DNA of 64,000 nucleotides from Paragordius varius (taxonomy: Eukaryota; Animalia; Nematomorpha): the NCBI GenBank assembly GCA_964247055.1, contig OZ176051.1:15066001-15130000 (forward strand), in the 5' to 3' direction. The translations under genes and the position numbers were made by a program. The notes under the pieces were generated by a model. It made no database searches, was not told the origin of the DNA, and saw only the letters and a list, made by a program, of their open reading frames with translations. Each line of letters opens with the position of its first letter. The stretch's first letter is position 1. Shown in pieces: positions 2,017-52,308 of this stretch.

Positions 2017-5000
2017 TTAATCGATAGTGCATGTTTTATGGGATATCTGAAGAGGTCTGCATGAAAATTTGCGTTTCGTCGATTCCATAGATCCAAGCGC
2101 CAAAAATAAATTTTTTATCGCAACTTGATTCATGTATGGATTCTCACAAAATTCCTTTAATATGTTTTATAAGAAGTAATATAGGAATGTAATTGAGGAT
2201 ATCAATAAAACACATACTTCCAGCATATATTCCAATTGCAATTCGGTCATATTTCTTGTTTGACTACTATTGGAGGAAGTAGCTATCTATTTTTTACAAA
2301 ATTAATATGAATTAAAAATACATGATGATAAGCCGTTTTTATGTATATTTAAAATATATTGTTTTTTTGGTAATATTTCCAAAACATACCGTCGCTAATT
2401 CTATGGCATTTCGTAAACGAACGATTTGCCGAAAGGTATCATTGCATATTTTTTCTATAATATGGATATCATATATAACAGAATGCACAATTGGGTTGGC
2501 TTATTTACATAAAAGTTGGTCAATTTGTAATACACTAGCATATGTCATAAAATAAACTTTGTCCATGATCAAATAAGCAAAGGTAGTATATGATAAAAAA
2601 GTAGTTTCAACATTTTGTTGGTTTTTTCATACACTACTGTGTTGCAAATTGACCAACTATAATGTTAATAAACCAGCGTAAATGTGAAAACTTAGAATAG
2701 CCATATAATTTTAGAGTAAGTTAAAATAATCACCAAAAGGTAAGAGTTTATATCCAAACATGAAATTGTTTCTATAAAAAATATTCATTAAATTATATGA
2801 GAAAATTTAATTTTAGCATAATCATACACAAAAGATGCTCCAGGCTCGGAATTCACAATTGGCACCAAACTATTCAAAAAAACGGTCCACACAAATTAAG
2901 AGGGGGGCATATCTCATTTAGTTTTATAATAATTACAAAAGAATATAAATTCATTAAAAACACACCACCTACCAGGATGGTGCAATGTTACGATAATGTG
3001 TGTTTCGTGCATTAAAGAAATCATGCATGTTGGATAAATAGGATTCGGCTGTCGGGATTGGATTAATCTAATGTATAGCATTATGTGTTTAAGAATTTTT
3101 ATATTGTCCTACTATACCTTCAACTAAAATATCACGTGAAAATTATCCTTTTAATTAAATGTGGATAATTTAAACAAATTTGGAATATTTTACTATATCT
3201 TATACCATTTACACTTCAAGAGTGTCCTTGAACAATTCAAGTTGGTCCTTGAACAATTCAAGTTGGTCCTTGAACAATTCAAGTTGGTCCTTGAACAGTT
3301 CAAGTAGGTCCTTGAACAATTCAAGTTGGTCCTTAAACAATTCAAATTAGTCCTTGAACTTCATGGTGATCCTTGATCACTTCAAGATGGTGCTTTAACA
3401 TTTTAAGGAACATTTCAAGTTTTTCTTTCAACATTTTATTTAGTTTTATAAGTGATTAAAATATGTATCATTCATTTATTATTTCATTTTTAACCCTTTA
3501 TCTCAGTTTTTAAACCAAACCTTTTTTTATTTTCGTACCGTATATGTTTATTAATTCTTAATACATTTCAATATTACCATAATTTTAACGTGTCATAAAA
3601 CAATCTTATAATATATTTACGATTATATGGTAATTAAAACATTCAAAGCTAAATTGTTGAATTGGAAAAAATATTACGACTAAACAAAAAAAGTGAATAA
3701 AAAAAACTTTAATTTACAATCAAAAATACTTACGAGGCAAGATATTAGATTGAAAAATAAAAAAGGGTATAATATGCATTTATCGTACGCACATAAATAA
3801 AAGTAAAGGATAAACTTAAAGTGTTAAAGGACAACATTCTTGAAGTTCAAATTATATCATTTGCCAAAAATATACATTATAATTTGGTAGACTATTATTT
3901 TTCATGAGGCTTAAATTTTTTTTATTTAATTTAACGGTTTATATATTAAAAGTGTGCATTTTCTTTTTAATTACAGTCATGTATCCTTTATTTTATAAAA
4001 AATTTATTTTCTTTCGTTAAATGGGTATAAATATTTCTTAAAGAATGGAAAAAAACAACAGCTCTATGGTATTAACAATATCATATTCATCAAAAAATTA
4101 AAGAATTACCATAGAGCTCTTGTTTTTCCATTCTTCTTTACCAAATATTTATACCCATTTAACGAAAGAAATTAAATTCTTGATAAAATGGATACATTAC
4201 TGTATATTGCAATCAAACTTAAGAGTATGTCATTTTAACAGTAAATATTTTTAATAAATTAATATGTATTCTACTAATTCGTGTTGAGTTTTATTTTGAA
4301 ATAAAAGAAAAATATACAGTTGCTATAATTCTTTGGAACTGAAAATATGGTAAATAAAAACATTGGAATATTACGTTGAAATAAAGATATAAAACACTGA
4401 TTAAGGAATTATATTTCAGTTATATAATTATGAAAATAAAATAAATACCAATTCCAGCGAATTATGTGGCTGAAAAAACAGGTTTGATACTGTTTTTCTA
4501 ATGCATCTCTGCAAAAATAGTTATCAAAAAAATTTACTGAATCATTTTTGTAATATCGTTGGTAGAAATCGGTTATGTTCACATACTTATTCACCATATT
4601 TTGCAACTGTAATATAAATCAATACATATAATAAAATAAATATACCTTTTAAACCAATTCACCCTTGAACAATTCAAATTCACTCTAAAATAAACTACGT
4701 TTTTATATGATCACAAATTACCTTAAAAAATAAATTTTTCTTAAAATTAAAACAAAACAGAAAAAAATAATAAACTATGTCATAAAGATATAATTTATAT
4801 ATTAATGATAAATTATATAATGGTGAATTTGAATTGTTAAGAATTTTCGAGGTTTTTTGTTGTATATGGTATATTTAAAATCTATATTCGATTTACACCT
4901 AAGACAAAGGTATATTGTTTTACTTTGGAAAGGGAAACTTCTTGTTGACTATGGTAAATTGAGTATTTTGTTAAATCCCATGGCTCGAAATTAATCATAT

Positions 5001-6300: not shown

Positions 6301-6885
6301 GTAAAAGGTGTTTTCTATTTATGCCACGTTTGATTGTTCTTTTGTAAATTTAACCAATTTATTCAAAAAAGATAATTTAAACCCAATTCAAAGAAAGGTT
6401 ATAATTTTTTAATTTCTAGATATAAAACCTTGAATTTGATGTAAACTTCGGTTACCCTAAGCTCCAATATTAGATTCTAATGGCCTGGGAAAAATACGAT
6501 AAATCTCACAGGAAGATTTTGAAATATTTACATAGCCCTAAATACAGCTACAGCGTCAATAATCAAACGGAAAAAATGAATCACTTTATATATCATTATT
6601 ATACTATTTTTCAGCCAATAGCAACACTTTTTCAACCAAACGCAACAATTTTCAAAAACAACATTTTTAAGACAACACAACACTTTTCAGTTGTGTACGC
6701 TTGAAAAAATATTGTCTTTGCTTAAAAAAATTGTCGTCTGTGCCTGAATAAATGTTATATTTTTGAAAAAAATGTTGTGTTTCGATGAAAAAAATGGCTT
6801 TGGACTAAAAATTGCTATTACATAGAGGGCGCAAAAGGCATTAAAACTGATTTTTTGGGCATAGGAATTTGCAAAATTAATAATA

Positions 6886-8348
6886 TACCATTTCCCAGTC
6901 TAAATAAACGTTTTCCCAGTCAATCGAAACATTTTCCCAGTCAATCGAAACATTTTCCCAGTCAATCGAAACGTTTTCCCAGTCAATCGAAACGTTTTCC
7001 CAATCAATCGAAACGTTTTCCCAATCAATCAAAACATTTTCCCAGTCAATAAAAACATTTTCCCAATCAATAAAAACGTTTTCCCAATCAATAAAAACGG
7101 TTTTATTTTTGATGATAAATATCAAAACAAGAATATAAAAACAACTTTTAACCATTATCAGCGTAATATATGGATATTATTTTTTATAAAAACACCGTTA
7201 TTGAATGACAATTTTTCCAAATATATTCCAGTGCACAATCATTAATAACATATTCTTTAAAAAAATTTTTGGAATTTGAGATGTTTTTAAGATAATATTT
7301 TTTATTTTATTGATGGTTCGCATTATTTGCGGCTAACTTACAAAATCTATAGTTACGGATGAAATATTAAATATAAAAATAATGTATCAATTTTATCTCA
7401 AAGGTTATTTAACACTTCATATTGGATCTTAAACATAAATTTTACCCTAATTTTATAATATTTATCATTTGGTTCATCGGGTGCCCAATGCGGCTTTATC
7501 TTTGTGCGGCCCGCTAAAATTTAGAAATCCATATGCAAAATTATGCCCACAAAATCTTAGTAATATTCATATTTCTTACGCAATTACTCTTAATGAGTCT
7601 ATTAAATTGGGAACAAATTAAAAAAATTATTATATTTTTGTATTTTACAGTCTTATGTCTAATCAAAAAATTATTTATGAAATATATCGAATGCGGAACG
7701 CCGTGCTTTTTAAGTAATGCGGCCCGCGAAGCCATTTGGTTAGACACCCCTGTTTTAGTCAAATATCTTTTTATTAAATATTTTTAAATTTAGATATTTT
7801 TTCCGACAGTATTTTTATGGAAAAACTTGACATGTTTAAAAACTGTTTTAAAGCGTTCGGCAATTATTATTGCGAACCATCAATAAAATAAAAAATATTA
7901 TATCAAAAACATCTCAAATTCCAAAAATATAATTTTTAAAGAATAAGTCATTAATGGTGCACTGGAATATACTTGGTAAATTGTCATTCAATAATTGTGT
8001 TTTTATAAAAAAATAATATCCTAATATTACGCTAATAATGGTTAAAAGTTATTTTTATATCTTGTTTTAATATTTACCATCAAAAATAAAACCGTTTTTA
8101 TTGATTTGGAAAATGTTTTTATTGATTGGGAAAATGTTTTTATTGACTGGGAAAATGTTTTGATTGATTGGGAAAACGTTTCGATTGATTGGGAAAGCGT
8201 TTCGATTGATTGGGAAAACGTTTTGATTGATTGGGAAAACGTTTCGAATGACTGGGAAAACGTTTCGATTGACTGGGAAAACGTTTCGATAGACTGGGAA
8301 AATGTTTCGATTGACTGGGAAAACGTTTATTTAGACTGGGAAATGGTA
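6886..8348. mobile_element. Non-autonomous foldback-type element, family A copy 1
   Basis: TA|TACCATTTCCCAGTCTAAATAAACG ... CGTTTATTTAGACTGGGAAATGGTA|TA. Inverted arms of ~443 and ~486 bp carry 10 and 12 copies of the 21-bp unit ATTGACTGGGAAAACGTTTCG. The ~530-bp core is shared with copy 2. Confidence 0.93.
7480..7752 (-). mobile_element. Captured hAT (Charlie/Buster-like) terminus inside family A copy 1
   Basis: Ends GCGGCCCGCGAAGCCATTTGGTTAGACACCCCTG (reverse complement CAGGGGTGTCTAACC...CGCGGGCCGC), with a second GCGGCCCG upstream. No partner end found. Confidence 0.6.
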
Positions 8349-12969: not shown

Positions 12970-13990
12970 TGATAGATTTGAATACATCAGTGAGCTAACC
13001 TTAGACTAGACATATTTATATATTAGATTAGGATACATTTTTATAGACCATCTAGTATTTGAATTAAACTATTGTATCACTTTTGTATTTAACACCCACA
13101 CGTGATTTTACCCTTTAAACATGTTATTATATACATAAAATTATATAAACATCGCAAATTTTTTATAGTTTAGCTAATTTATCTCAATAAATCTTATTGT
13201 TTAATTAAGTCATCACATTTGGCCAGTTTTTTATCTCATTACATTCGTGCATGGAGGAATTAAGTCTCGAAGCATATGATCCCGCAACTAGTTTACATGA
13301 CGATTATATAAATAGAATCTTAAAAGTCAAAGTAATTCAAGGAGATGATAAAACAAAAAAAATGTTATTGGCCTAAATCTGCCAATACCATATTCCAAAG
13401 TTGAAGAGATTTATCCCGTACTCTTAGAAGTGGGGTGGGAGGCTTTGCTAGAAGCTATAAATATTTGCAACTCCGCATGAAGCCAAGGAATCAGTGAGGG
13501 ATTATTTGGCAAGATGCAATACTAAGAATCAAAGATGGGTTTTTTGGAGCGTTACAACTCAAGAGGTTGGAAATAAATCTGTTCATGAAATTTCCAGATG
13601 CAATGTTGGATGGAAAACCTGTTACGTGGGACATGGTGATAGGAATAACAATGGCGTACAAAAAGGATAGTTGTTTGATTGAACAGAGTTCTGACAATAG
13701 GCAGGTGAAAAAGAAGTGTGGAAAATGTGGGTACGTGCATCCGATCAACTGGTGTCTCGCTTCAAACAAAGAGTGTTACCGATGCAAAGAACAAGGTCAT
13801 TTTGGCAGGTGTCGCCGACGAGTTAATATAGTGAATGGTAATGAAGCCCGAACGCAAGCAAGTTTGAATGTCCATTAGGTGATGATGGTGTACGATACCG
13901 GACAAATATGATTAATTGGGAAGCACGTGGCTGAAGATTGGAAGGCCGATCTTAGTACCCGTGGGTCCAAACAACTTGATGAAACTGTTG
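12970..13990 (+). mobile_element. 5'-truncated piece of the Gypsy family found at 34805-41653: LTR (12970-13217), gag remnant, start of protease
   Basis: LTR TGATAGATTTGAATACATCAG...CATCACA followed by TTTGG. Gag with the knuckle CYRCKEQGHFGRC, matching 38085-38327. A YDTG protease motif lies at ~13890. Confidence 0.85.
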
Positions 13991-17932: not shown

Positions 17933-19186
17933 TCAAAGTTTACAGTGCGGGAAATATTAATGAAAATTTTTGTCGCAAAACATCTAAACAAATACTATCA
18001 TAGTGTAAAGCATTAGAACAGACGTGTCCGAAACCAAAATTAGTGTAGGATTTTGTATTTGTTCTCGAGCTGTTATCATTATTACGTTTGGAAATTGACA
18101 GATGCAATAAGATATGAAGAAAATAAGGTTCGATAAATCTCTTTTAACGAAAATTAATGGCTCTGTTGGCAATTTATCATTTTTATTGAGTGTTGATGAT
18201 CTCCTCGCTTCTTTAGTTAAGCTATTTTGACAGAGGTGGTTTTTTCTAACAGATTCATTCACATTTATAGTATATATTTGTATAGTTTCCATAGTTTTAA
18301 ACTTAAAATGCAAGCCAAGATATTTTTTACGAGTATTTGAGTCCTGTCTCACTAACCCTATCAGATACGTTAGTTTTATACCATAAAACAGGATTATAAA
18401 AGCGGGAAGATTGGAGAAAATGGTCATACAAATTATATCATAATACCCTACCCAATGCAGTACAAATATTTCACGATCAAAGTAATATATCTTTTCACTT
18501 GTTACTGTGTTTTCCTTCAAATCGGATGATAAAAGATAAAAGTAATTGTCTTGCGTAACATTTAAAAATGGGCAATTAAATTTCCAACATTTTCTACGTT
18601 ATACCAAAAAAGGCAGTAAATGAAAAGGCGATAGCTAGTATACAACTTATCCATGGAATAGAGAGCTTAATTAGCCTATATTTTGCACAGTATTGTTTGT
18701 ATTGTTGTAAAGGATGGACCAACGAGACATATTGGTCCCTTAACATGAATGCTAAAACTATTGTTCCTCCAACTTCCAAGCCATTAGATAACATTAGTGC
18801 TACATAAAGGCTTTTAGAAGGTTAGGATTAGCAACAAATGGAGAATCCTTAATTTTCATACATATCTGACGCATTTCATGCACGACACTCAGGATTGAAT
18901 TCCAAAAATTGATCCAAATCAGACTTGTCAAATAATAATAATACGACTGACTAGCTGGAAATGTCATATGTCTTCTTATTCGTCGCAATATTATGAGGCC
19001 TAAAGCATTTCCCAAGATGCCGGCTATGGAGAGGATCGGCCAAATTACCACTTGTAAATAAGTATCGAATTGGGAAATTGGCATTTCCAATTGCCAGGAA
19101 GGAATTTCGTTCCTACACTTTATAACTAAACCTTGTGTCTCCAAACATGAATTATTTTGATAAAATGAATATGACTTGACAACCAT
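17933..19186 (-). pseudogene. Intronless rhodopsin-class (peptide-receptor-like) GPCR, frameshifted in this sequence
   Basis: TM1 PILSIAGILGNAL; TM2 YYLTSLIWIN; TM3 ending LRDQYVSLVHP; ECL2 Cys; TM5 SNLPAFIIL; TM6 FISYCICQFPNVI; TM7. Three -1 shifts fall in runs at 18806-18808, 18606-18611 and 18590-18593. A TAG at 17984-17986 lies where the TM7 Tyr is expected. Confidence 0.85.
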
Positions 19187-20034
19187 AATATTTGTGGATA
19201 TATTAAAACTGGAGCAATTTACTTATTTTATTGTATAAAAGATATCAGGTAAATATGCAAATTGATAAATAATATTAATCAATCTCTCTCATCGCCAATG
19301 ACGTAAAATTTATTATTATAAAATAAATTAATATCTATTTTTAACGGTTGTAATTATATATAGCATGTATAAGTTAAAGACATTACAACAATCCGAAAAA
19401 AGTCATTAATAATTTATTACTTTTTTGATAGTATTCACCTTTTTATTTAACAAACTCCCTCAGAACATTAAAATTAACGCGTAAATATTTTGATCAACTT
19501 GGGCTTGTTTTCAACCCTATAACATATATAAGATGGAATTTAAATCATTGCGAAAATCGACAAAAATAAATTGATGTACCTAAAATATTTTTAAAAAATA
19601 ATTCAATATTACTTTATTTATTATGGAAAAACATTTAAGTTAGAAAACATGACACGTGGGCATACACCGATTTTAACCATATATAAAAAAAAAGCAAATG
19701 TTATTATAAAAAAACCTTTGCAAAATGTTTCATTGTAAAAAATTGTGAAAACAAAGGGGAAGTAATCAATTATTTTATTAATCTAATCATTAATGGAGAA
19801 CCAATATTTGAATTGGGTAACCTTTTTGAGTATTTAAAAAATATCGATCACAAATTTTTGTTAGATATAAAGGGGATTGGATGTGTTTAGGGATTCTAAA
19901 ATATTTGCGGGAAATTTGAGTTGATGGATTTTATATAAATAATATCATAAGGCAATATCATTTAATGATATTAGAGTTTCAAATAATGAGAAAACGCAAT
20001 AAATAATTTACTGTCTAAACATATCTAGTTTGCA

Positions 20035-20190
20035 TACCGTTTGCACTTCAAGATTTGCCTCTACTTCAAGTTGGTCCTTGAACATTCGCGGGTGTTGCTC
20101 CACACTTCTAGTTGGTTCTTTAACTTTTCAAGTTGCTCCCTAAATATTTCAAATTGGACTTTCAACTTTTGTAGATTGCTTTTAACTTTT
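20035..20190. repeat. Decayed family B terminus and 21-bp units
   Basis: TACCGTTTGCACTTCAAG followed by CTTCAAGTTGGTCCTTGAAC and further ~21-bp periodic variants. Confidence 0.5.
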
Positions 20191-29015: not shown

Positions 29016-29109
29016 ATATTTATTTAGTACCCAGTAATATCGTTATACATTGCCAAATTTAAATAATATTTACTTAATCTCTTTTAATACTATAGGCATT
29101 TTTATTCTC

Positions 29110-29117
29110 TATATAAG
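29110..29117 (+). promoter_or_regulatory. Candidate TATA box
   Basis: TATATAAG about 40-47 bp upstream of the ATG at 29157. Confidence 0.4.
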
Positions 29118-29156
29118 ACACCCAAAAATTATATCAAGGCTATTAATTTTTTTGCA

Positions 29157-31846
29157 ATGATACCACTATCAATTTTATTCCTATTTGGGTTCTGCGGTGT
29201 ATTAGCTCAAACTCAACCAAAGCCAAAAGATATATGGGTTAGATTTGGTGACGAATATTATTATGAACTTCTTGATGTATACAAAGGGAGAGCTAACATA
29301 ACTGTCAATTTTGCGTACAAAACATTTTCCTACCGTAATGTCAATTATAGTCAATTTCTTGATAAAGAGATCGCACCTAAATTGAATTTAGTGGATGGCC
29401 CTTATTCAGTACTGAAAAATGGCGTGACAGTTAGCCGTGGACAAATTTTTATTGAAGGTATATTCCTTATTAATAAGATACTCTTGTGCAATTGTTTTTT
29501 TGTATGATAGAGGCTACTTGTATGTTTCAATAAATATTAAATCCTTAAATTATGATTTGTAATTGCATATACTTTATGCTTTTGGTTATATATCATTGAA
29601 TAACAAAACAGTACATGTGATATTGTTACACGCTCTGTAAAGATTATTTTCTCAATTTAACCTTATCAATTGATATTTTATCTCCTATATTAAATTGTAA
29701 TTTTTCGATATATAGAACATACAGATATCATAGAGGTATCTCCGAATCAGATCAAAAAGTGTGAATTTGATATAGCTGAATTTTGGCAACCACTAAAAAA
29801 TTCTAAAACACCCCCTACCATTCAAATAACTACCAAATATGGAAAACGAGTGCCCTTCCAAGTGTCAAACAAAACGAAATTAATTTTTAATATACCTGGT
29901 AAATGTGATTATGCTGGAAGTTTGATTATTACCATAGATGGAAAAAAACTTGAAAACTATATTATAGTCTCCTACCCTTTGACGGAATACAGGAGCTACA
30001 ATGGGCGATTTATATTTGAGGAAGATTGTTCTGATTTGTTTAATGACCCAAATTTAGCAAAAAAGTGTCGATTAAACCTCTATAGTTTCAATCGAATTTC
30101 TGAAGTATCTAACGGGTCAATCCGGGCTAATATAACAGCGGTCCCTGATGAGACTTTAGTCCTTTTCGTGAATGGTTATACTTATAGAACTTGGGAAACT
30201 AAATTTGTTGGTATTTCATCATTTATAATTAATATTTTTATATAAATATATTTAACTTTAAGTGTCATGACTGTATATCCTGGTAGGTGAATATTAAAGT
30301 TTACAAAAGTCCTTATGCCATTGTTTTTATTTATCTCATATGCAAGGAAAATGACTCCAAACTATATATATATATTTAATGTAGGAACGTGGGACAAAGC
30401 TGGAAACTTTAAATATACCCCTAAAAGTTTAAGTAAGTTCTATTACTATTAATATTTTCTATGACAAATATATATTATAGAAATAATACATCATTCCTAT
30501 TTGTAAATATAACATTGTGTAAAAAATCAGATATTCCGACCTTTCATTAAAATATTTTGCTTTTATCACACATGCTAAACCATAAATTTAAACAGTACTT
30601 AAGATATTAATAATTAATATTAAATCGAAAATTCCTTGTCAAGTCAATTCCATATAGCGGATTCTTGCTTAAAAACTTAGAAGTGGTGTAATACCGTAAA
30701 ACAAACGCTCCTTAAATTTTACAAACACGTTAAATTTATTGAATATTAGCAACAAGCGTGCGGAAATACTATCAATGTGAAAATACAGTTAGTTTTTCAA
30801 CACTTGGATGGAATGTGAAAGATGTTGAGCTTCTCGGCCCTTCTTATGAATATTTGAACAAATTTAAGACGTCCATGGACAAAAATCAATTGATACTAAG
30901 TGTTCCGGGAACACAAATATCCAAATACGACAAAATATATCTAAAAAAATTGGATTCTCTTCATGAAATCAAATTGGTAGCTCAAGAGTGCAAAACTATT
31001 TCCAAAAGTATTATTTTTATTAAAATATATATTAAATTATAAATGATATAAGAGAATTGACTTTAACCTTTAAATTTTTATATATAAATGCAACATAATT
31101 ATTAAAATAAAAATTTATTTTTATTTAATGTTTAATATAGGGTATTTATTAATTAACCTAGAAGAATATATAATTGGCTATGAGTAGAAAAAAACGAAAC
31201 TCAATTGCTTTTCTAATGTAACTATTATATTAAAATTTTTATAGATAGTTGTCGGATAACACACAATTTTCCAGGGTTAAGTTTTATAGAGAATCTCATA
31301 CGATTTTTCATAAAATTTAATTTACCTAAATAAAATAGTATTTTAATAATTCTTTGGAACATTTAAAGCTAGATTGAGAAAATGTAGTTTGGTGGAAATT
31401 ACCTGATATTCACCTGCTTAATAATAATAAACAAAGTACAGAATGAGTCAAAACACATAGCCCTTTAAATATTCTCACACACATAAAAGATTCTTAGTTT
31501 ATTTTAGTTACTGATGACTAGAATTACTACAATTTGATTTTTTGCATAAAATTGATCGTAATATATTTTATAAGCCACCTCAATGCATTTTTTTTTTAAT
31601 GTGTAATATTTTTCTTTTATCGATATATTAGATATTAGATGGAATAATGCAAGGACGTGGGATCAAATCAAGTCACACCTCTTACCAAACCAATATTCCA
31701 CGGAAGTAACTGTCCATGCCAAGAATCAGTCTCGTTACACAATCGAATGCAGAGCGAATTCTTGTAGAAAATTGCTTCTTTCGGTCGGAGATCAACTCGC
31801 TATTATTAATAATCAATTAAAACTATTAATAACACAAAATATCTAA
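29157..31846 (+). CDS. Six-exon gene for a 446-aa secreted protein with no recognised domain
   Basis: Exons 29157-29457, 29716-30210, 30385-30432, 30750-31007, 31245-31275, 31639-31846. All introns GT-AG with consistent phases; 1341 nt, no internal stop. Signal peptide MIPLSILFLFGFCGVLA. Confidence 0.82.
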
Positions 31847-34804: not shown

Positions 34805-37800
34805 TGTGGTGACTCGGGAAACCGTAAAACAATAATATTTATAAATGTATTCAAACCTAATATATACATTTGTTATTCTAAAGCTAACTGATGTATTCAA
34901 ATCTATCATATCTTCTTATCCGAATCCAAGCCGATCTGGTGCTTTTCTTTCCCTAAGAGGATATCTTCTTTCAGATTCTTTCTCAGTTGTCTTTTCCGTT
35001 TTCATTTCAACCTGGGTGTCTTTCTCGTTTTCTTTTTCTTTGCTTTGTTCCTCCCCCACCTCCCGATTATTGGTTGTAATACATTCATCCTTTTGGTTTA
35101 TCGTTAAAACACCATCATCCCCCTCTCCGCCGTTCTCGACGCCGGTCAGCCGTAGATCCGCATTTTGCGAAGTGTTCGATATCCATCTTTTACCGAGTGC
35201 GAGAGTATCCCTGTTTTCTCCAAAATTGAAACTTTTTTCCACCCCGAATTGATTTCATTCTTTATGTACACTTCTTCGTCCGGTCTAAAAACTTGATTGG
35301 GTATTATGTCGTCCTCTAATTGTTGTGCGGGTGTTTCCCTAACTCAAGAGAAGGGGGTATTAATATGTCTTTTCAGAAATAAATTATACGGGCACTCTTT
35401 TGTGGCGCTATGTACGGCGGAGCGATAACCCCATAACACTTGATTTATTTTTTTGTCAGGAGTCAGCTTAGAATCCGTTAGCGATTTATACTGTCCTTTT
35501 AAGGTGTAAATGACGCGTTCCACCAGCCCTTTTGTTCGTGGATGATAGGGGGCACTAGTGACATGTTTAATGTTTGCTCGTTGCAAGGTATCTTTAAAAT
35601 ACTTTGATGCAGAATACGATGCATTATCGGTAACTATCATTTAGGGAAACCCGTACCTTACACACCAAATTTCTAACCAATGTAGTATGTTTGCAGAATT
35701 AACAGTGCTTAGCAATTCGACTTCAACCCATCTGGAGCTACTATCGATAGCTACTAACCAATAAAACCCATAAATAGGACGGGCAATATCAAGATGTATC
35801 CATTCCCAGATACCCGTATTAAAATTCCATTTGTACGTGGGATTGCCTTTTATGCTACTCCGGTTTAACTGACACCCCATACAAGATCTCACATAACTTT
35901 CGGTATCTTGACTTTTACCTGGCCAATAACCCTTGACTTGGCAGACTCTTTCATTACATTAGTCCCCGAATGTCCATCATGCAAAAATTTTAACGTTTCA
36001 TTGCGCAACGCCCTGGGAATAAAAAGATGATCGCCCCAATACAACAAATCATATGATTCTTGTATTTCGTTTCTTATGCTCAATATCAAAAAAATTGGAG
36101 ATGACCAATCATTATGATGTAGTGCCGCTTTTAATGTCATTAAAAACTCATCCCGTTAAGTATTTTCTTTAATTCGCTGTCCGTTTAAGTTGTCTGTTGT
36201 TAAAATGAATTACCTACTGGGTGCTCGCTCATCAACCTCCTCTGTCGGTTCTTCATACGGTAGACAATAACCAATCCGCCAAATTTTCCCAACCATTAAT
36301 ATATTGAATATTAAAATTATAATCGGCTGTTCTGAATATCCATCTTACTATTTCTACTATTGTTAATATTACTTAGATCTCTTTTACAGCCAAACAACTT
36401 GATTAGGAGTTTATGATCGGTTAATAATACGAACTTTCTGCCATACACAAACATTTTAAACTTTTCTAGCGCATACAAAATTGCCATTGCTTCTTGATCA
36501 ATTACCGAGAAATGTTGTTCTGCCTTTGCACATTTTGGATACGCAAAAGCTATCGGCCGTTTTCCATAACTTATCATATGTGATAAGACTGCTCCGAATC
36601 CATCATTCGTAGGGTCTGTTTCAAGCACCAAGGGAAGGTTTGGGTTAAACGGTATTAGACAATGCCCTACTCACCAACAGTTTAGCTTTATTAAAAACCC
36701 CTACTTTTTTTGTAGCCAACATCATTTCTTAGAACCTGTAAGCGCATGTAAATCCGCGATTGTAGCATGCAAAAATGGGATAAAACGAGCGTGAAAATTT
36801 ACATTCCCAAAAAAGATCGGAGTGATGTCTTATTGGTAGGTGTAGGACAATTGAAAATTGCTTTTACCTTTTCGTTATCAGGTTTAACTTTGTCTTATAT
36901 CCTAAGTATGACACTGAGGAACGAGCTAATTGAATTTTATCCTTTTTTAATTTCAAACCCACAGCAGCTAATTTGTTTAAAACTTTTTCTAAGTTATCCT
37001 TATGCTGCATTACCGTTGTTCCATTAACAATTACATCATCTAAGCATACCGCCGTACCTGGACAATCTTTTAATAACTCATCCATAATTTGTTGAAACAT
37101 GGGTGCACTACATATTCCCAATGGCAGTTTCTTGAATCGAAAAAGGACCTATATGCGAACCAAATGTGAGTAAATGTGGATAATCTTGGTGAATAGGCAT
37201 TTGCCAGTAAGCTTCTTTTAGATCTAAGGTCGTAAAAACCTTTCCCTGCCCGATTTTAAACACTAACTGATCAAACGTTGGAATCCAATGATCGACAGAA
37301 ACCAGACTTGGGTTAACAGTAACTCTAAAATCACCACATATGCTAATATCATTATTAATCTTTTTAACTATCACCAACGGAGTTACCCAGTCAATTCGTG
37401 TTTGCGAGGAGTTTATGGCCTCAATGATACCCGGACTTTCAAGCCTCTTTAATTCACTCTCCACCTTAGACTGAAGCGGAATTGGTACCCTCCTGGCCGC
37501 AAATCTTTTGGGGATACTCCCTTTTTTGAGAAACAACTTGATGGGTTGTCCCGTGTAACACCCCATACCCTCACAAAACAAATCCTTAAATTTATTATAT
37601 TCCACGTAATTAACATTTTTTACACATACAGGCTTTGGAAATCTGCATTCAAAACTTTTCATCCATGGTAATCCAAAAATGTTACCCCAATCATCCCTAG
37701 TAACCATACATTCCAACTGTTTGACCATACCATTCCATTTCACATCTACCATACATTGTCCCATCACCTCTACACCTTGCTGGTTGAACCCAACTATTGG

Positions 37801-40800
37801 ACCCGCGGGAGCTAAGGTCGGCCGCCCAATCTCCATCCACGTGCTCTTCTCAATCAATGATATTTGAGCTCCGGTATCGTACAACATCCTCACCCAATAG
37901 TCATTCAGACTTTCTTGCGTTCGGGCTTAATTATTATTAATGTTACCATTCATTATATTAATTCGCCGTCAACACCTGCCAAAATGACCTCGTCCTTTGC
38001 ATCTGTAACACTCTTTGTTTGAAGCGGGACACCAGTTGATCGCATGCAAGTACCCACATTTTCCACACTTCTTCTTTATTATCATCACCTGCTAATGGCA
38101 GAACCCTGTTTAATCAAATATCTGTTCGCCTTTTTGTACGCCATTGCCATTTCTACCACCATCTCCAACGTAACAGGTTTCCCATCAAACATTGCATCTG
38201 GAAATTTCGTGAACAGATCTATTTCCAATCTTTTTAGTTGTAACCTTCCAACAAACCCATCTCTGATTCTTAGCAATGCATCTTGCCCAAAGTTGCACCG
38301 GGCAGCACATTCCTTTATCCGAATCAAAATCCATCATCGATTCCGTGGCTTCCCTCCGGAGTTGCGTAAACTGGAACCTGGCTGCAAACACATTGTATGT
38401 CGGAGCAAATATATTTTTTCCAACTGCTACCGAATTCCACCCAACTTCCTCTAACAGTACAAGACAAAAGAATTTCTTCATCTTTGGAATATGGGATAGA
38501 CCGATGTAGGCCAATAACAAGTTTTTTTGTTTCGACATCTCCATGAATTAATTTCACTTTTAACATTCTATTTATATAATCGATATAGTCATCCAAGCAA
38601 TTTGCGGTATCATATTCCAGACTTAATTACTCCATGCACGAATGTAATGATGTAAAACGACCGCGCCAAATGTGGTGATTCGAGAAACTGTAAAAAAAGA
38701 ATATTTATTGAGATAAAATACAAAAACTAAACTATAAAAACTTGCGGTGTTTATATACTTTTTATGAAAAAAAAACATTTACATGTTGAACCAAGGTACA
38801 ATAAGGTGTGCAGGTTAAATACAAAATTAATACATATTTTTTAATTCAAATATAAAAGGTCATCAAAAATGTATTCAAATCCTATATATAAATTTGTCTA
38901 GTCACGCATGTAAACACATGCTTTTAATCGAGTGGGAAAGGTACGGTATACTTACCCATCTCTTATCGACCTTTTTTATAAAAAACATTAATTTTATACC
39001 TTCTTCGAACATTAGAAATAGTTATATTATATTCCTTACATATCCTTAACATATTTCTCATCATTCTCCCATTCTAAGCACATTCTGCTAATGTTGAAAT
39101 CACGTAATCTCAGCATCCGTACCGCAACGTGGTTTACGTGGAGCTTACAACAATCACAAATTAGATATAGTAGTATGACGAAGCATAAAATTGACATACT
39201 AGGAATTTCAAAGTCACACATTCCCTCTACCGGAACCTGAGAATTTGACAATCATATCTGTATTACTCCGGTTATCATTCGTTAAAATACAACGGTGTCG
39301 GTATAATAATGAATAAAAAGTTAGAAATTTATCGGACATTTTTAATCTAATCAATGAACGCAATCCGCATACAAACAACCCCTCAACCCATTACAATCTT
39401 TCAAATTTACGCCCCTATCTCCTCCTACAGCGATGACAACTGTGAAAATATTTACAGTGATTTCGACTTGGCGATTTCCCAATCAAAAAAAGATATCATA
39501 TTTATCTTAGGCGATTTCAATTCAATCATAGGAAAAGACAAAACACCTCCATGGGCATAAAAAAGGAGAGAGGAGATAGATTGATTGAATTTTGTGCTAA
39601 CCATCGTTTCTTCGTCTCAAACACCTTTTTTAAACAGCCCAAACGACGTCTATACACATGGCGTTCCCCGTGTCAAAGATACCGTAACCAAATTGACTTC
39701 ATATTATGTATGGTAAAATATAAAAGTTCATTTCATAATGTCAAATGCCTACCAGGATCGGATTGCTACAGCGGCCACAACCTATTGATCGCCAAACTCT
39801 GCATTAAATTACAACTCCCAAAATTTCCAAACCCATTAGAACAAGATTAGTTTATGATACAATCGACGACAAGTTTAGCACCGCTTTATCAAATCGTTTC
39901 GAGTGTCTTGATCATAATTCCGAAAACTATCAGAATATAAATTTTGGAACGCTATACACACAATCTGCAGAGACACCGCCGACGAATTTATACAGCCTCT
40001 CAAACGTACTAAACAAAAAATTAAATTATCAACAAAAAGTCTTCGCAGAAAAACGTAGAGAATCCAAAATCAAATGCAAATGGGATGAAAACAAACAACT
40101 AAACAGTGAATTTCAAAAGAGTGCAAGAGAGGACAAAAATAATTATTATGACCAACTGTGTGAAAAATTAAAAACAGACGCCAAAAATAACCAAAACCTT
40201 TTTGCCCATACAAACAATATTATTCCTCACAAAAAAGGTTTTTACAAGGGACCTATGAGAAACGACAACACCTCAATCATCACCGAAAAAGACGAAATTC
40301 GCAAACTCTGGCTTAAACACATAAGTAAACTATCCAACGTAAATAACCCCCAGACTATCAACGAACCTACTCACCAAAAAGAACCACCCATAATGAAAGA
40401 AGAACACGCTATAAAACACTAGTACGGAAAATCAGAGGGGCAAAAGACATCTCTACTAAATATTAAAATATATCCCAATCGATATACTTACCAAATTATT
40501 TCGAAATATATTTGAGGTGGAAAAAATTCCTGAGGATTGTTGCACATCAATTATGATTCCTATTTTAAAAAAGGGTAATACAGAACTGTGCGACAACTAT
40601 CACACCATATCGCTCATTAACCAGGTGTCCAAAGTTTTCCTAAAAAAATACATTTTCTACTAAATACCATTCGTGGCCCGATAATATCCACGATTCAGGC
40701 TGGTTTTAGAAAAGGTAGATGATGCCGAGACATAATATGCAATATGAGGTGGATACTAGAGAAACATATCGAATTCAACAGAGAATTGCACATGTGCTTT

Positions 40801-43820: not shown

Positions 43821-44147
43821 TGATAGGCTAGATTTTAGATCTAAAAATATAAAATTTAACGTGGAAAAGCTTCTTTAGATCTTGTGAGCTGTAATATGTA
43901 TCGCTAATGTAGGTATATTATTTTTATTTTTAATTTATTTCGGTTTCATTTTTCATTTTAAGTACTCTATATATTTTACTGTTTAATTTTTCATTTATTA
44001 TTATTTTTTTCACTAACTTTTTAATTGTATTTTTTGGGTTTTTTAATGAAGCGTGAAGGCCAGACCTAGCCAGTCGCTTCACGGGAGGTAGGGACCAATG
44101 CTATAGAGTATGTTTTATCATTAATGTTGGTTTGTTATGAACTAAAT

Positions 44148-44452
44148 GAATTACAGTAAAAATTGAAATTATACGGACAAAACGTATAAATGTAAGACAA
44201 ATATTTTTTCTTAAGGAAAACCATACTTTTTTATATATAAATTTTTCTCATATAAGCTATTTAGTTACAATTATAAAATATAGAATTGATTGTATCAGTT
44301 ATATATAAATATATCTATTTCAAACTTTTCCATTTAAAACAATGAGTTATATTGATATAAATCTAGATTTAATAAGTATTGTTGTCTTTTTAAAAAAATA
44401 TTTGTTTTTGTATTTTTACGTTTTGTCCGTATAATTTCAGTTTGAGTGTAAT
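44148..44452. mobile_element. Foldback MITE
   Basis: TGAAATTATACGGACAAAACGTA versus TACGTTTTGTCCGTATAATTTCA inverted arms. Confidence 0.65.
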
Positions 44453-45649
44453 TAATGGAGATGAAATATAAATTTTCTGCATTCAGAAGACTAGATACCG
44501 TAGTAACTATGGGTGGAGTTTCAAAATTAGGAAACGCTTTTTCCTTAGCTTTTTTAAAAGATTCCTTATGGAGTGAATAATCTAAAGCAACCCTAAATAA
44601 TTAACATTATTTTTATAAGGAAACACTTGTTAAGTGAATATTAATTAAGAAATCCTACATATTTTTTGGGATACTAAATATCATCCGTAAATATTTATAA
44701 ATTTTATTACAATCGATAGTAGAGGATCAAACAAGGCATAGAGCTATACGGTTTTGAAATCATATTATATTTTTATTATATTCAATCAGTAAAACAAGCT
44801 TTTCAGATACATTTTATATATCTCAAGATTTAAAGTAATTTTTATGTTAATATTTTAGATTCTACTATTGGACTGCGGTGTAGATATTTACAAATTTGTT
44901 AAGACACAAAAAATATAACACATAAGGGAATCAATATATCTGATATGAAACAATTTCTACGATTTAATGAAAGCAATAATCTACATAACAAAATATACTT
45001 TCCCTGATTCCGATGAAAAGAGAGGAGAAGCCCTAAGTCCGCGAAAAAATTAGAATTTTTTTAAGATTTTTCGCAAATCTAAGGCATCAAATTTTTATTG
45101 GTCTAGTTTTTGGGGTGCACTTTTTAACTATCTTATTTTTGTTCAAGCCACAAAAATTGAGTCAATTAGTATCTTAATTCGTATAATAATAAACCATTAT
45201 TTTATAGAAAAATGTGTAAATCAAACTTTAAGCTATTTATTATTTATTATTATAAAATGTGGATTAGGTCCAAATAATATAAGAAAATATTTCCGATTCC
45301 GTGCGATCTTTTATAATAAAGTTTCCGGCAGTACTTTGATTATATTTTATAATTGCGGTTTTCATGTTATCAATTGCCTTTCTAGTTTGATCAATTTCAT
45401 AAATATTTTGTTTCCATAAAAAGTTCGATTTTATTTTTTATAAGCTTATTTTTCGTAATACTACATATGAATCATAGATGCATTTAAAGCTATAGGATAT
45501 CTAATATATATTAGTTTAAAGTTATTATACTAGAAGGTATCTTAGGTAATATAGGTTTTAGGAAACACAATGGTAAAACAGATGTTTTTCTATTTAAATT
45601 ATAAAGGAGACTCTTTCTTTGAAAAAGTGAGCATAGAAAACACTTAAAG

Positions 45650-47519: not shown

Positions 47520-48945
47520 TACCATTTCCCAGTCTAAATAAACGTTTTCCCAGTCAATCGAAACATTTTCCCAATCAATCGAAACGTTTTCCCAGTCAAT
47601 CGAAACGTTTTCCCAGTCAATCGAAACGTTTTCCCAGTCAATCGAAACGTTTTCCCAGTCAATCGAAACATTTTCCCAGTCAATAAAAACATTTTCCCAA
47701 TCAATAAAAACGTTTTCCCAGTCAATAAAAACGCTTTTATTTTTGATGATAAATATCAAATCAAGATATTAAAAATAACTTTTAACCATTATCAGCGTAA
47801 TATTAGGATATTATTTTTTGTAAAAACACAATTATTGAATGACAATTTTTCCCAATTATATTCCAGTGCACAATCATTAACTTATTCTTTAAAAATTATA
47901 TTTATGGAATTTAAGATGTTTTTAAGTTGATGGTTCGCATTATTTGCGGCTAACTTACAAAATCTCTAGTTACGGATGAAATATTAAAAAAATAATATAC
48001 CATATCTCGGAGGTCATTTAACACTTCAAATTGTATCTAAAACATTAATTTTACCTAATTTTATAATATTTATCATTGGTTCATCGGGTGCCCAACGCGG
48101 CCTGCCGAGTATCTTTGTGCGGCCCGCTAAAAATTTAGAAATCCATATGCAAAAATATGCCCACATAATCTTAGTAATATTCATACTTTTTACGCAATTA
48201 TTCTGAATGATTCTATATTGGTAACAAATTAAAAAAATTGTTATTTTGTATTTTACAGTTTTATGTCTAATCGAAAATTTTTTTATGAAATATATCGAAT
48301 GCGGAACGCCGTTCTTTTTGAGTAATACGACCCGCGAAGCCATTTGGTTAGACACCCCTGTTTTAGTCAAATATCTTTTTATTAAATATCTTAAAATCAA
48401 AAAAATATTTACTGAAAAATTTTTTTGTTTAGATATTTTTTCCGACAGTATTTTTATGCAAAAACTTGACATGTGTAAAAACTGTTTTAAAGCGTTCGGC
48501 AAATATTAATGCTAACCATCAATAAAATAAAATATATTATCTTAAAAACATCTCAAATTCCAAAATATATCTTTTAACGAATAAGTCATTAATGATTGTG
48601 CACTGGAATATACTTAGAAATCGTCATTCAATAATTGTCTTTTTACAAAAAATAATATCCTAATATTACGCTGATAATGGTTAAAAGTTATTTTTATATC
48701 TTGTTTTGATATTTATCATCAAAAATAAAACCGTTTTTATTGACTGGGAAAACGTTTTTATTGATTGGGAAAATGTTTTTATTGACTGGGAAAACGTTTC
48801 GATTGACTGGGAAAACGTTTCGATTGACTGGGAAAATGTTTCGATTGACTGGGAAAACGTTTCGATTGACTGGGAAAACGTTCCGATTGATTGGGAAAAT
48901 GTTTCGATTGACTGGGAAAACGTTTATTTAGACTGGGAAATGGTA
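47520..48945. mobile_element. Non-autonomous foldback-type element, family A copy 2
   Basis: Same TA|TACCATTTCCCAGTC termini; 10+10 21-bp units; core collinear with 6886-8348, including the hAT end finishing at 48360; (TA)n on both flanks. Confidence 0.93.
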
Positions 48946-48983
<38 letters not shown>

Positions 48984-49245
48984 AAGGTAAGAGGGGAAGA
49001 AGGCACACTAAAACGCGATGGATTGATAGGTTAATTCAAATAAACTTAAAACGCAAGGACGCCATAGACAGGTATGGCGAAATAGTTTACGGATGTGATT
49101 GCTCGAGAGTGATATCATATAATGTAATTATTATTAAAAGTCGTAATCATGTAATCCTACATGGTATAATTTTAATATTATATGTGTGGCTTAAAAAATC
49201 TTGATGTTTAATGCGCGTAGCGTGCGCTGGAATTTGATCACTATA

Positions 49246-51778
49246 TACCATTTCCCAGTCTAAATAAACGTTTTCCAAGTCAATTGAAACATTTTCCCAG
49301 TCAATCGAAACATTTTCCCAGTCAATAAAAACATTTTCCCAGTCAATCGAAACGTTTTCCCAGTCAATCGAAACGTTTTCCCAGTCAATCGAAACATTTT
49401 CCCAGTCAATAAAAACGTTTTCCCAGTCAATAAAAACGGTTTTATTTTTGATAATAAATATCAAAACAAGATACAAAAATAATTTTAACCATTATCAGCG
49501 TAATACTAGGATATTATTTTGCTAAAAAAACACAAGTATTGAATAAGAATTTTTCCCATATATTCCACTACACAATCTTTTTATCTTTGAAAGCTATATT
49601 TTATTAGCTGGATGAGTATTTGATGGTTTTAGAGATTAAGAAAATTAATAATTTATTTATTTTATTAACGTTCGCATTAATATTCGGGGCTAACCTAAAA
49701 TATCCAAAGTTTCGGATTAGATTATAAAATTTATGTATTTTCAACTCTTTACAATCAAAAAGGAAACCTTTTAACTTTGTCCTTGATCAAAATACTGTTT
49801 TAAAAAATAATTTTACGATGAAAAAGTTGATTTTAATGAAAAATATATTGGATAAAATACAAATGCATAATATTATGGTACGCAAGTTTATGTTAATTGA
49901 AGATGTTTAAGTATGAATGTTTAAGGGCTAACTGAAACACAAATGGTAAACCTTTGTGACTATCTGGTGTGCAATATTGTAATTAAAAATATTATACCAT
50001 TATTTTCTCGTCTATTTTAATTTCTTGGATAAAAACCTTCCGTAGATTATTTTGCATACATCATATTATCTGTATAAGGTTCATTTTATTTAGTAATATT
50101 TTAGTAATGTCAGAAACAGGAATCAAGAAAAAAATAGTTTTATCTCAACAAGATAGAAAACGATTAGTAAAACGATTTTTTTTCGATGAAGAATGGACTG
50201 TGGATGTATCAAAGGATTTAGATATAAACTATAATACTGCTCGTCAAATTATGTATAAATATAAAAAAAACAATAGTTCAGAAATTCTAAACCGTGGAGG
50301 CACTAAAAACAAAAAAATAACGGAAGATATTATGCATTTCATAGATGATAAACTAACTTATCAGCCGTCATTAACAATTAACCAGTAAAAAAAATTTCTG
50401 GAAGATGAAAAAAAATAAAATTATCTAAATCCTCTATAGACCGAGTAATCAAATCTTTAAAAATAACTTTGAAGTTAGCCCATCATCTTAATGAAAAAGT
50501 CAATGATCTCAAATAATAGATTTAAGGAAAAAATACGTTATATGGTTTTCACAATTTTACTCCGATGACTTAACAAATATAATTTATTTGGATGAATGCG
50601 GTTATAATAACCATATTAGAGGAAGCCAAGGTCGATCCAAAAGTGGCACGAGAGCCAATATTGTGGTGCCTAGCGTAAAAGGCAGAAACATCCCTTTTAT
50701 TGGAGCTCTGTCATTAAGAGAAATGGTTTATTACGAAATAGAAAGCCAAAGAACAGTCAATTCCCAACGCTTTACAAGTTTTTTTGATGGACCTAGTGAA
50801 TATTTAAAGCGGGACGATATTAAATATCATTTTATTATGGACAATGCACGGATTCATAAAAAAATGAATTAAAAGGTAAACCGATTTATACAAATACAAA
50901 ATTGATCTTTTGTCCCCGCACAGTTATATGTTGAACCCAATCGAAATGGTATTTTCAAAAATAAAAAATTTTGTCCGACAAAATATTTAAATAATATGAA
51001 TGCGAATGTGGAATTAGTGAATCTAATAAAATTGGCAGCGGGCTCCATAACATCGGAGGATAGCAGATATTTTGAAAAGATAATGACAAATATGGTAAAG
51101 GCGGCAGCCGGTTTACCTTATATGTGATTATAACATATACAATAAATGAAAATCATTTTTTAATATATTATCTCAATTTGTCTCTCTAATAAAATCAAAC
51201 AATTATTTAGGTATATTTGTACAGTAATAGTCCAACTTTTTAAAAATAAGTTATTAAAGATTGTGTAGTGGAATATATGGGAAAAATTGTCATTCAATAT
51301 TTGTGTTTTTATGCAAAATAATACCCTAGTATTACGCTGATAATGGTTAAAAGTTATTTTTGTATCTTGTTTTGATATTTATTATCAAAAATAAAACCGT
51401 TTTTATTGACTGGGAAAACGTTTCGATTGACTGGGAAAACGTTTCGATTGACTGGGAAAACGTTTTATTGACTGGGAAAATGTTTCGATTGACTGGGAAA
51501 ACGTTTCGATTGACTGGGAAAACGTTTCGATTGACTGGGAAAATGTTTCGATTGACTGGGAAAACGTTTCGATTGACTGGGAAAACGTTTCGATTGACTG
51601 GGAAAATGTTTCGATTGACTGGGAAAACGTTTCGATTGACTGGGAAAACGTTTCGATTGACTGGGAAAATGTTTCGATTGACTGGGAAAACGTTTCGATT
51701 GACTGGGAAAATGTTTCGATTGACTGGGAAAACGTTTCGATTGACTGGGAAAATGTTTTGATTGACTGGGAAATGGTA
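49246..51778 (+). mobile_element. Putative autonomous family A element: IS630/Tc1 transposon with long array-containing TIRs
   Basis: TA TSD; left arm ~49246-49575 (9 units) and right arm ~51255-51778 (18 units); transposase gene between the arms. Confidence 0.92.
50107..51127 (+). pseudogene. IS630/Tc1-mariner DD34E transposase, ~341 aa after restoring five 1-bp homopolymer losses and one TAA
   Basis: N-terminal HTH-like region and RGG linker. Catalytic D in YLDECG (50591), D in MDNARIH (50840), E in LNPIE (50943); D-E spacing 34 after correction. 1021+5=1026 nt. Confidence 0.9.
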
Positions 51779-52248
51779 TATATAATGGCTGATTTTTTTC
51801 GTATAGATTATGGACGCTACAGGATATGGTTATACCAGCATTAATTAATAAAGTTATGTTATTGATATTTAAATAAAATCTTGTTTTTATCCGTTAGTTA
51901 ATCTCTTCAAGTAAGGGTATATTCGATAAAATTGTTAGTTGGTAATTATTTAATTGGATATAAGAAATGTTATATATATACGATGGCCATCCTATATTGA
52001 TGGGAAACTAGAAACAAGTTATTTTGCAATAAATACCATATAATTAACAATAACCCATCAGCGGTTTAAAATAAAACCGGGTGGGTTCGTAAGAAAATGA
52101 AACCGAGAGTTAGTGGAATGCTAAAATCTCAGGAATCGGGTTCCGGCTCGAAGCCCTTTTTATCCATACACTACTGTCTTGCCAATATCGTTATACATAA
52201 TGTACATACTGTATATGCAACACACTAATCATACGCCGATATTTTAGC

Positions 52249-52249
<1 letters not shown>

Positions 52250-52308
<59 letters not shown>
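52250..52308. repeat. (TA)n microsatellite
   Basis: About 29 perfect TA units. Confidence 0.95.

Follow-up and report, generated by a model that had tools for sequence, protein, structure and literature searches.

The element at 49246-51778 of the window (the whole 64-kb stretch of DNA analyzed here) is best read as a decayed cut-and-paste transposon that targets TA and belongs to a eukaryotic DD34E clade of IS630-like elements, with ends made of arrays of 21-bp units that putatively provide one footprint each; we put the probability of this reading at about 0.7. That it has the anatomy of a real transposon is confirmed. It is 2,533 bp long, with a TA directly outside both ends (49244-49245 on the left, 51779-51780 on the right); the left end reads TACCA from 49246, after the flanking TA, and the right end is its mirror at 51778. 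The first-pass annotation had described a TA target-site duplication and inverted arms of 330-530 bp with 9-18 tandem 21-bp units, and this is what was found. The left terminal inverted repeat (49246-49581, plus strand, about 336 bp) consists of a 5-bp tip, a 21-bp array and a unique inner segment; the right one (51256-51778, minus strand) covers about 523 bp. The left array has 9 units of 21 bp with the consensus TTTCCCAGTCAATCGAAACRT (49251-49439, plus strand, TRF score 265) and the right array 18 units, one of them 20 bp (51397-51773, minus strand, TRF score 676). Each array begins at base 6, straight after the TACCA tip. The unique inner inverted segment of each arm is about 146 bp (49440-49581, plus strand, in the left arm) and is 95% identical between left and right.

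The units are alike but not uniform. Among the 51 compared, 12 of the 21 positions are invariant, and in the three elements present in the window the unit types are ordered along the arrays as terminal, then middle, then inner. A special terminal unit occurs at five of the six element ends in the window and is missing from the right array of 49246-51778. Ten occurrences of the terminal 10-mer were counted in the window (1.9 expected). Long inverted ends with tandem repeats whose number varies between copies and between arms make this a foldback architecture. No match of the 21-bp unit was found among the viral contigs or plasmids searched, and a search of the sequence gave no tRNA and no Rfam family. 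The window as a whole is about 29% GC and has few genes.

We favor a TA duplication, with an element end starting TA or CA, over a Sailor-like TATA, because of the unit register and the empty allele. In relatives starting with CA the register of the units is kept, and it puts the start of the element at the second TA. In runs X1, X2 and X6, joints that connect the left flank with 51777 give a candidate allele without the element (with uncertain junction letters); TA units number three plus four at the filled site and apparently four at the empty one, a difference of three. These counts, from TA runs that are by nature unstable, fit two terminal TA plus one duplicated TA, and TATA is disfavored. 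There are (TA)n microsatellites at 48944-48983 and 52250-52308; a shorter relative of the element, E2, sits in a (TA)n microsatellite 300 bp from 49246-51778, which is consistent with TA targeting.

Between the arms is a broken IS630-like DD34E transposase gene (50107-51127, plus strand; 339 codons with X at the breaks) with a Pax-like two-HTH domain at the N-terminus and a DDE domain at the C-terminus. Its pieces were searched separately, and the breaks were read as X to give a 339-residue read-through protein. The core matches Pfam DDE_3 (E 1.5e-8) and NF033545 (IS630), and intact homologs score above the cut-off of the latter. The catalytic triad codons are D50591, D50840 and E50943 (50591-50945, plus strand); the 100 nt from D50840 to E50943 correspond to DD34E after allowing for two lost bases, and 35 of 36 intact homologs have this spacing. 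Aligned with the intact homolog P0003, the read-through protein is 39% identical over 324 columns with 4 gap columns. The N-terminal region used as a query matched only itself, and no RNA run among those searched contains the stretch. The earlier assignment of the enclosed gene to the DD34E transposases is thereby borne out, as is the IS630-like branch, given the NF033545 matches of the intact homologs and the microsporidian relatives described below.

The same annotation took the copy for the autonomous master of its family, and this claim fails. The gene has six breaks, which the earlier reading did not mention: an in-frame TAA stop (50386-50388, plus strand; TTA in most related copies of public runs) and five -1 frameshifts, each through the loss of one base from a short A or T run (50408-50990, plus strand; at about 50408-15, 50511, 50858-64, 50878-80 and 50986). 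There is thus no intact reading frame. In addition, the protein differs at 13 of 60 highly conserved columns (0-11 in intact members), and two of these are otherwise invariant (F to Y at 160, Y to H at 271). Public runs show what the multi-copy relatives retain. At 50387 the dominant letter of related sequence in four runs is T, giving a sense codon, and the stop letter is low in run X1 (275/8,127); at 50621 an A that restores a conserved Arg is dominant wherever covered; and many related copies have an extra A after 50407. Against the multi-copy type there are 11 differences in 362 bases, or about 3%.

Could the gene be intact in the organism, the breaks being homopolymer assembly errors or hidden micro-introns and the copy an autonomous master after all? 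That all five frameshifts are single-base losses within A or T runs would fit assembly errors. However, the sixth break is a substitution stop with a sense codon in the bulk of related copies, the conserved Arg at 50621 is likewise kept in that bulk, invariant residues are changed at 160 and 271, and a right-junction contig from public runs agrees with the window with zero gaps. Micro-introns were rejected: the alignment to P0003 has no additional segments of 20-30 nt, and four of the six breaks have no GT-AG window. We consider an intact gene very improbable. Because of the changes at conserved columns and the dominance of sense letters in related copies, 49246-51778 is a decayed member of its family and not the master; it is itself dead and of little value beyond being an example of long arrays.

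The two shorter relatives noted earlier in the same 64 kb are there, and both are non-autonomous: E1 (6886-8348, 1,463 bp, 10 and 12 units) and E2 (47520-48945, 1,426 bp, 10 and 10 units). Both have non-coding interiors, 86% identical between the two, and that of E2 is not derived from the transposase gene; the single long open frame in them has no Pfam match and no equal-length counterpart in E1. With 49246-51778 they have in common solely the arms and about 300 bp at the left. The idea that they are internal deletions of it was rejected, as no transposase remnant is present. Summed contig depth, which is not a copy number, is much lower over the transposase than over the arms and the non-coding interior, where it also exceeds that of the flanks. 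We take this only as a sign of a multi-copy family with many non-autonomous copies and fewer coding ones.

The same arms around a different, non-coding interior in E1 and E2 might suggest that a small IS630-like transposon had inserted into an unrelated non-coding foldback element, much as HB1 did in Drosophila FB4. Nevertheless, no inner inverted repeat or TA-flanked boundary was found around the transposase gene, and intact homologs from at least 10 samples lie directly inside arms of like design with the same tip motif. By this survey of homologs a nested insertion is effectively refuted, and the gene belongs to the arms.

Other repeats share the window. A sister family is represented by an end at 3203-3407 (a TACCA tip after TA, then 7-9 units of a different 21-mer) and by a decayed relative at 20034-20168, with a possible partner end near 3806-3852. 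Lying 70 bp upstream of E1 is a short MITE-like element (6602-6818) that has a TACTA tip and, at either end, degenerate 21-bp units. Hairpin-like inverted repeats starting TACAGT (3972-4204 and 44146-44456) are probably MITEs of the classical Tc1/mariner type. Broken remnants of Ty3/gypsy-like retrotransposons are found at 13000-13970 and 34840-38900, where one open piece has weak protease and RT matches, and open pieces at 39461-40419 resemble by eye the endonuclease region of a non-LTR retrotransposon, the first of them having no Pfam match. Two further open pieces, at 18803-19222 (minus strand) and 29088-30242 (plus strand), resemble host exons by eye, one for a receptor-like and one for a secreted-looking protein, and have no clear Pfam match.

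Homologs of the transposase, at about 35-45% identity, were found in metagenomes, in the microsporidia Enteropsectra breve, Cucumispora dikerogammari and Dictyocoela muelleri, and in the nematode Strongyloides papillosus. Where the flank was long enough, nearly all close loci proved to have 21-bp arrays within inverted ends. The array-bearing homologs from microsporidia and metagenomes are 28-45% identical in protein sequence and represent at least ten samples, with about half of the surveyed loci coming from one metagenome (Ga0307474). A period of 21 was in register in 38 of 84 flanks (at least two units), 27 of them with at least three units; the other periods from 15 to 28 reached at most one flank each, and shuffles 0.06. 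The test used a single terminal pattern, composed after the ends had been seen, and treated each period from 15 to 28 alike. Tips vary among relatives (TACCA, TAGCA, TAGGT, CACCT or CAGGG), while the units always start at base 6, and a loose unit consensus is common to 26 loci despite divergent unit sequences. L006, L002, L020, L021, L028, L041 and L075 are complete elements, each with a full-length match enclosed by arms of this kind. For instance, L006, from E. breve, shares the TACCATTT tip, carries some six units at each end and has an open frame of 357 codons. Unit number across the clade runs from about 1-2 (L008, L032) to 18; the D. muelleri locus L007 has about 16 units of 21-22 bp, and L004 has at least 11 and at least 17 at its contig ends.

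The survey of bacterial IS630 relatives found no arrays. In a quick maximum-likelihood tree (SH-aLRT support only, midpoint root; built without the near-duplicates L005, L010 and L014, most bacterial repeats and the named ITm references) the window protein falls in a clade of 43 rows (support 99) with arrays in every scored row. Arrays also occur in two more eukaryote-type clades and are absent from four rows that are not of bacterial type. On this comparison of sequences, the 21-bp array is a trait of the clade and not of this host. The first-pass idea of a single foldback family is accordingly right about the arrays and the architecture, which are real, but not about their extent, since the layout spans a wide clade and is not one family's peculiarity. 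The apparent foldback structure is an ordinary feature of this clade at its longest.

Some individual loci deserve mention. At L009:219-3299, in a related element, the transposase shares the space between degenerate units of 21-22 bp with a FLYWCH-MULE gene on the other strand, which may be a nested Mutator element. At L006:3769-6885 a second right-hand array end lies 1.4 kb past the first, and alternative ends could pair. In Musca, Calliphora and Lucilia (P0207-P0209) a zf-AD domain is fused to a remnant of such a transposase, possibly a domesticated gene; P0207 and P0208 cluster with the array-bearing loci L042, L045, L064 and L075.

What might the units bind? The structural model of P0003 has two three-helix bundles with a GG-K linker between them and an RNase H-like core, and matches the Mos1 and Sleeping Beauty structures. 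A sequence-profile comparison with the PDB put the Pax6 paired domain first, and 19 of 36 members match Pfam PAX. It is also observed that the N-terminal domain of the clade (alignment A1) scores nearer to Pax paired domains than to the solved binding domains of Tc1/mariner elements. B-DNA has about 10.5 bp per helical turn, and 21 bp is two turns. We infer that each unit is most likely one site, and one footprint, for the Pax-like bipartite N-terminal domain, because of the domain itself and of two precedents: in Sleeping Beauty a paired-type domain binds a bipartite direct repeat and the inner repeats govern ordered assembly (PMC5224488), and in Galileo the tandem repeats of the long TIRs are secondary transposase sites (PMC3688188). 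Co-variation between unit sequence and DNA-binding domain, corrected for catalytic-domain distance, was not significant (partial r 0.145, p 0.07). Compared with Pax6 probes (PMC7046147), the units resembled P6B (p 0.009) and the P6CON core (p 0.04), three other probes giving nothing significant in what were five post-hoc tests; the resemblance runs in the forward orientation, the reverse of the PAI-inside arrangement in Sleeping Beauty. We treat the weak likeness of the unit consensus to the P6B site as a lead only. As a still weaker extension, the Pax-like domain and the unit consensus may place the clade near the transposase ancestral to the paired domain.

In the mechanism we propose, the outermost unit, fixed 5 bp from the tip, would position the catalytic domain for cleavage, and the inner units, one per two helical turns, would load or titrate more transposase on the same helical face, as the additional sites do in Sleeping Beauty, Bari and Galileo. 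Slippage or unequal exchange would shift the number of units, and conversion would homogenize the two arms. The element at 49246-51778 and its short non-coding relatives would move, if at all, by means of transposase from intact copies elsewhere.

Since members with only 1-2 units exist, long arrays are dispensable, and this leaves room for neutral expansion: only the outermost unit would be functional, the rest being a minisatellite that grew from a duplicated binding site and was kept symmetrical by arm conversion, with a period of 21 bp that is merely the size of the single site. The range of unit numbers between relatives and the inequality between arms of one element fit such an origin, as does the right arm of 49246-51778, which is doubled and has lost the special terminal unit. 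On the other hand, two or more in-phase units are retained by almost all members whose flanks are long enough, across 28-45% protein identity, the period almost never drifts (L007, with 21-22 bp, is the one case), and the order of terminal, middle and inner units is kept in three elements. We regard neutral arrays as a real but minor possibility and prefer one putative footprint per unit. A bolder proposal, which we hold to be unlikely, is that this is an undescribed eukaryotic IS630-like clade in which several transposases load in helical phase, one per 21 bp, and unit number tunes activity. If true, this would be multi-site end assembly as in Mu, Tn7 and IS21, which this superfamily is not known to have.

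No description of a fixed 21-bp in-register array across an ITm clade was found in the literature covered, which excluded most subscription papers and the repeat databases. The idea is not new in kind, because expansion toward a foldback-like form has occurred several times over, in one case in mariner (Mcmar1, PMC3169594); Mcmar1, Galileo and the IR/DR elements are partial precedents for the layout. What long transposon ends with internal repeats are for is an open question (PMC3688188), and the clade offers a natural test series for it, with a fixed period, a fixed distance to the tip, 1 to 18 units and many unit sequences, as well as intact natural transposases such as that of L006. There are practical consequences too. 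Repeat annotation is likely to split such elements into a satellite and an unclassified transposase, and long inverted arrays at many places in this genome would be plausible sites of ectopic recombination (as may be inferred from PMC3169594).

Among known systems, the element is, by its sequence, a member of the IS630/Tc1/mariner group, having TIRs with a TA duplication and a DDE/D domain with an N-terminal pair of paired-like HTH motifs, but it is neither Tc1 proper nor of the IR/DR subgroup of Tc1. It has the 34-residue spacing of strict DD34E/Tc1 but not the Tc1-type catalytic motifs or CAGT-type ends (its ends are TACCA). Sleeping Beauty, Minos, Bari, Paris and S share with it the TA duplication, DD34E, a PAI+RED paired-like domain and more than one repeated site per end (PMC5224488, PMC8834629). 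Such IR/DR elements have two or three spaced direct repeats per end, in contrast to the 9-18 contiguous units of this element and arrays of up to 18 in the 21-bp clade, and their catalytic motifs are WSDE, QDNDPKH and WPSQSPDLNPIE (PMC8533490 Data S2), as against FIDES, LDNARIH and LSPYSYMLNPIE here.

The element also has the traits of DD34E/Gambol (DD34E, proximity to IS630, TA duplication), so that membership of Gambol, judged by description only, is plausible. The portions available of the accounts of Gambol, Hiker and Dici indicate shared DD34E (Gambol and Dici), TA duplication, closeness to IS630 and, for Gambol, long TIRs (PMC3212995, PMC13469147), and in those portions 21-bp arrays are not mentioned. 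DD35E/Hiker is set apart by its 35-residue spacing, and Dici-type elements, as far as described there, are unlike the present one in having ends that start CAGTC or CACTA and proteins of 430-480 aa. Is the clade then an already described family (Gambol, the ISRm11-type repeat-library class or a Repbase entry) with its repeats on record? Gambol is a DD34E group close to IS630 whose long TIRs survive in MITEs only in their outer part (PMC3212995), occurrences of it are given for Anopheles and Schmidtea (10.1101/2025.11.06.686975, supplement), and IS630-like fly proteins of similar length fall in a sister array-bearing clade. Against this, the literature on the layout and on Gambol, in the parts available, gave no account of 21-bp arrays in such elements, and we find it doubtful that the clade, arrays included, is already on record.

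Bacterial IS630 elements share the NF033545 match and the TA target, but the bacterial-type relatives have ends of 26-31 bp where detected, without arrays, and form a separate branch of the tree. Sailor (DD82E) has TATA outside ends that start with CC (PMC8533490), and neither its DD78-111E spacing, about 82 in that case, nor its duplication agrees with the spacing of 34 and the most likely TA duplication found here. Mcmar1 of Meloidogyne chitwoodi, a Tc1/mariner element with 355-bp TIRs of direct repeats and palindromes, has been cited as an expansion toward foldback (PMC3169594); it is a single mariner-like element, whereas the array described here is clade-wide, of fixed period and in register. 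Galileo (P superfamily), Tm1/Phantom (Mutator) and Drosophila FB likewise have long, internally repetitive TIRs of variable length, but they use transposases of other superfamilies and make other target duplications (9 bp in Tm1). Foldback is an architecture and not a lineage (PMC3169594), and in its working the present element may be likened to multi-site elements of the IR/DR or Galileo type.
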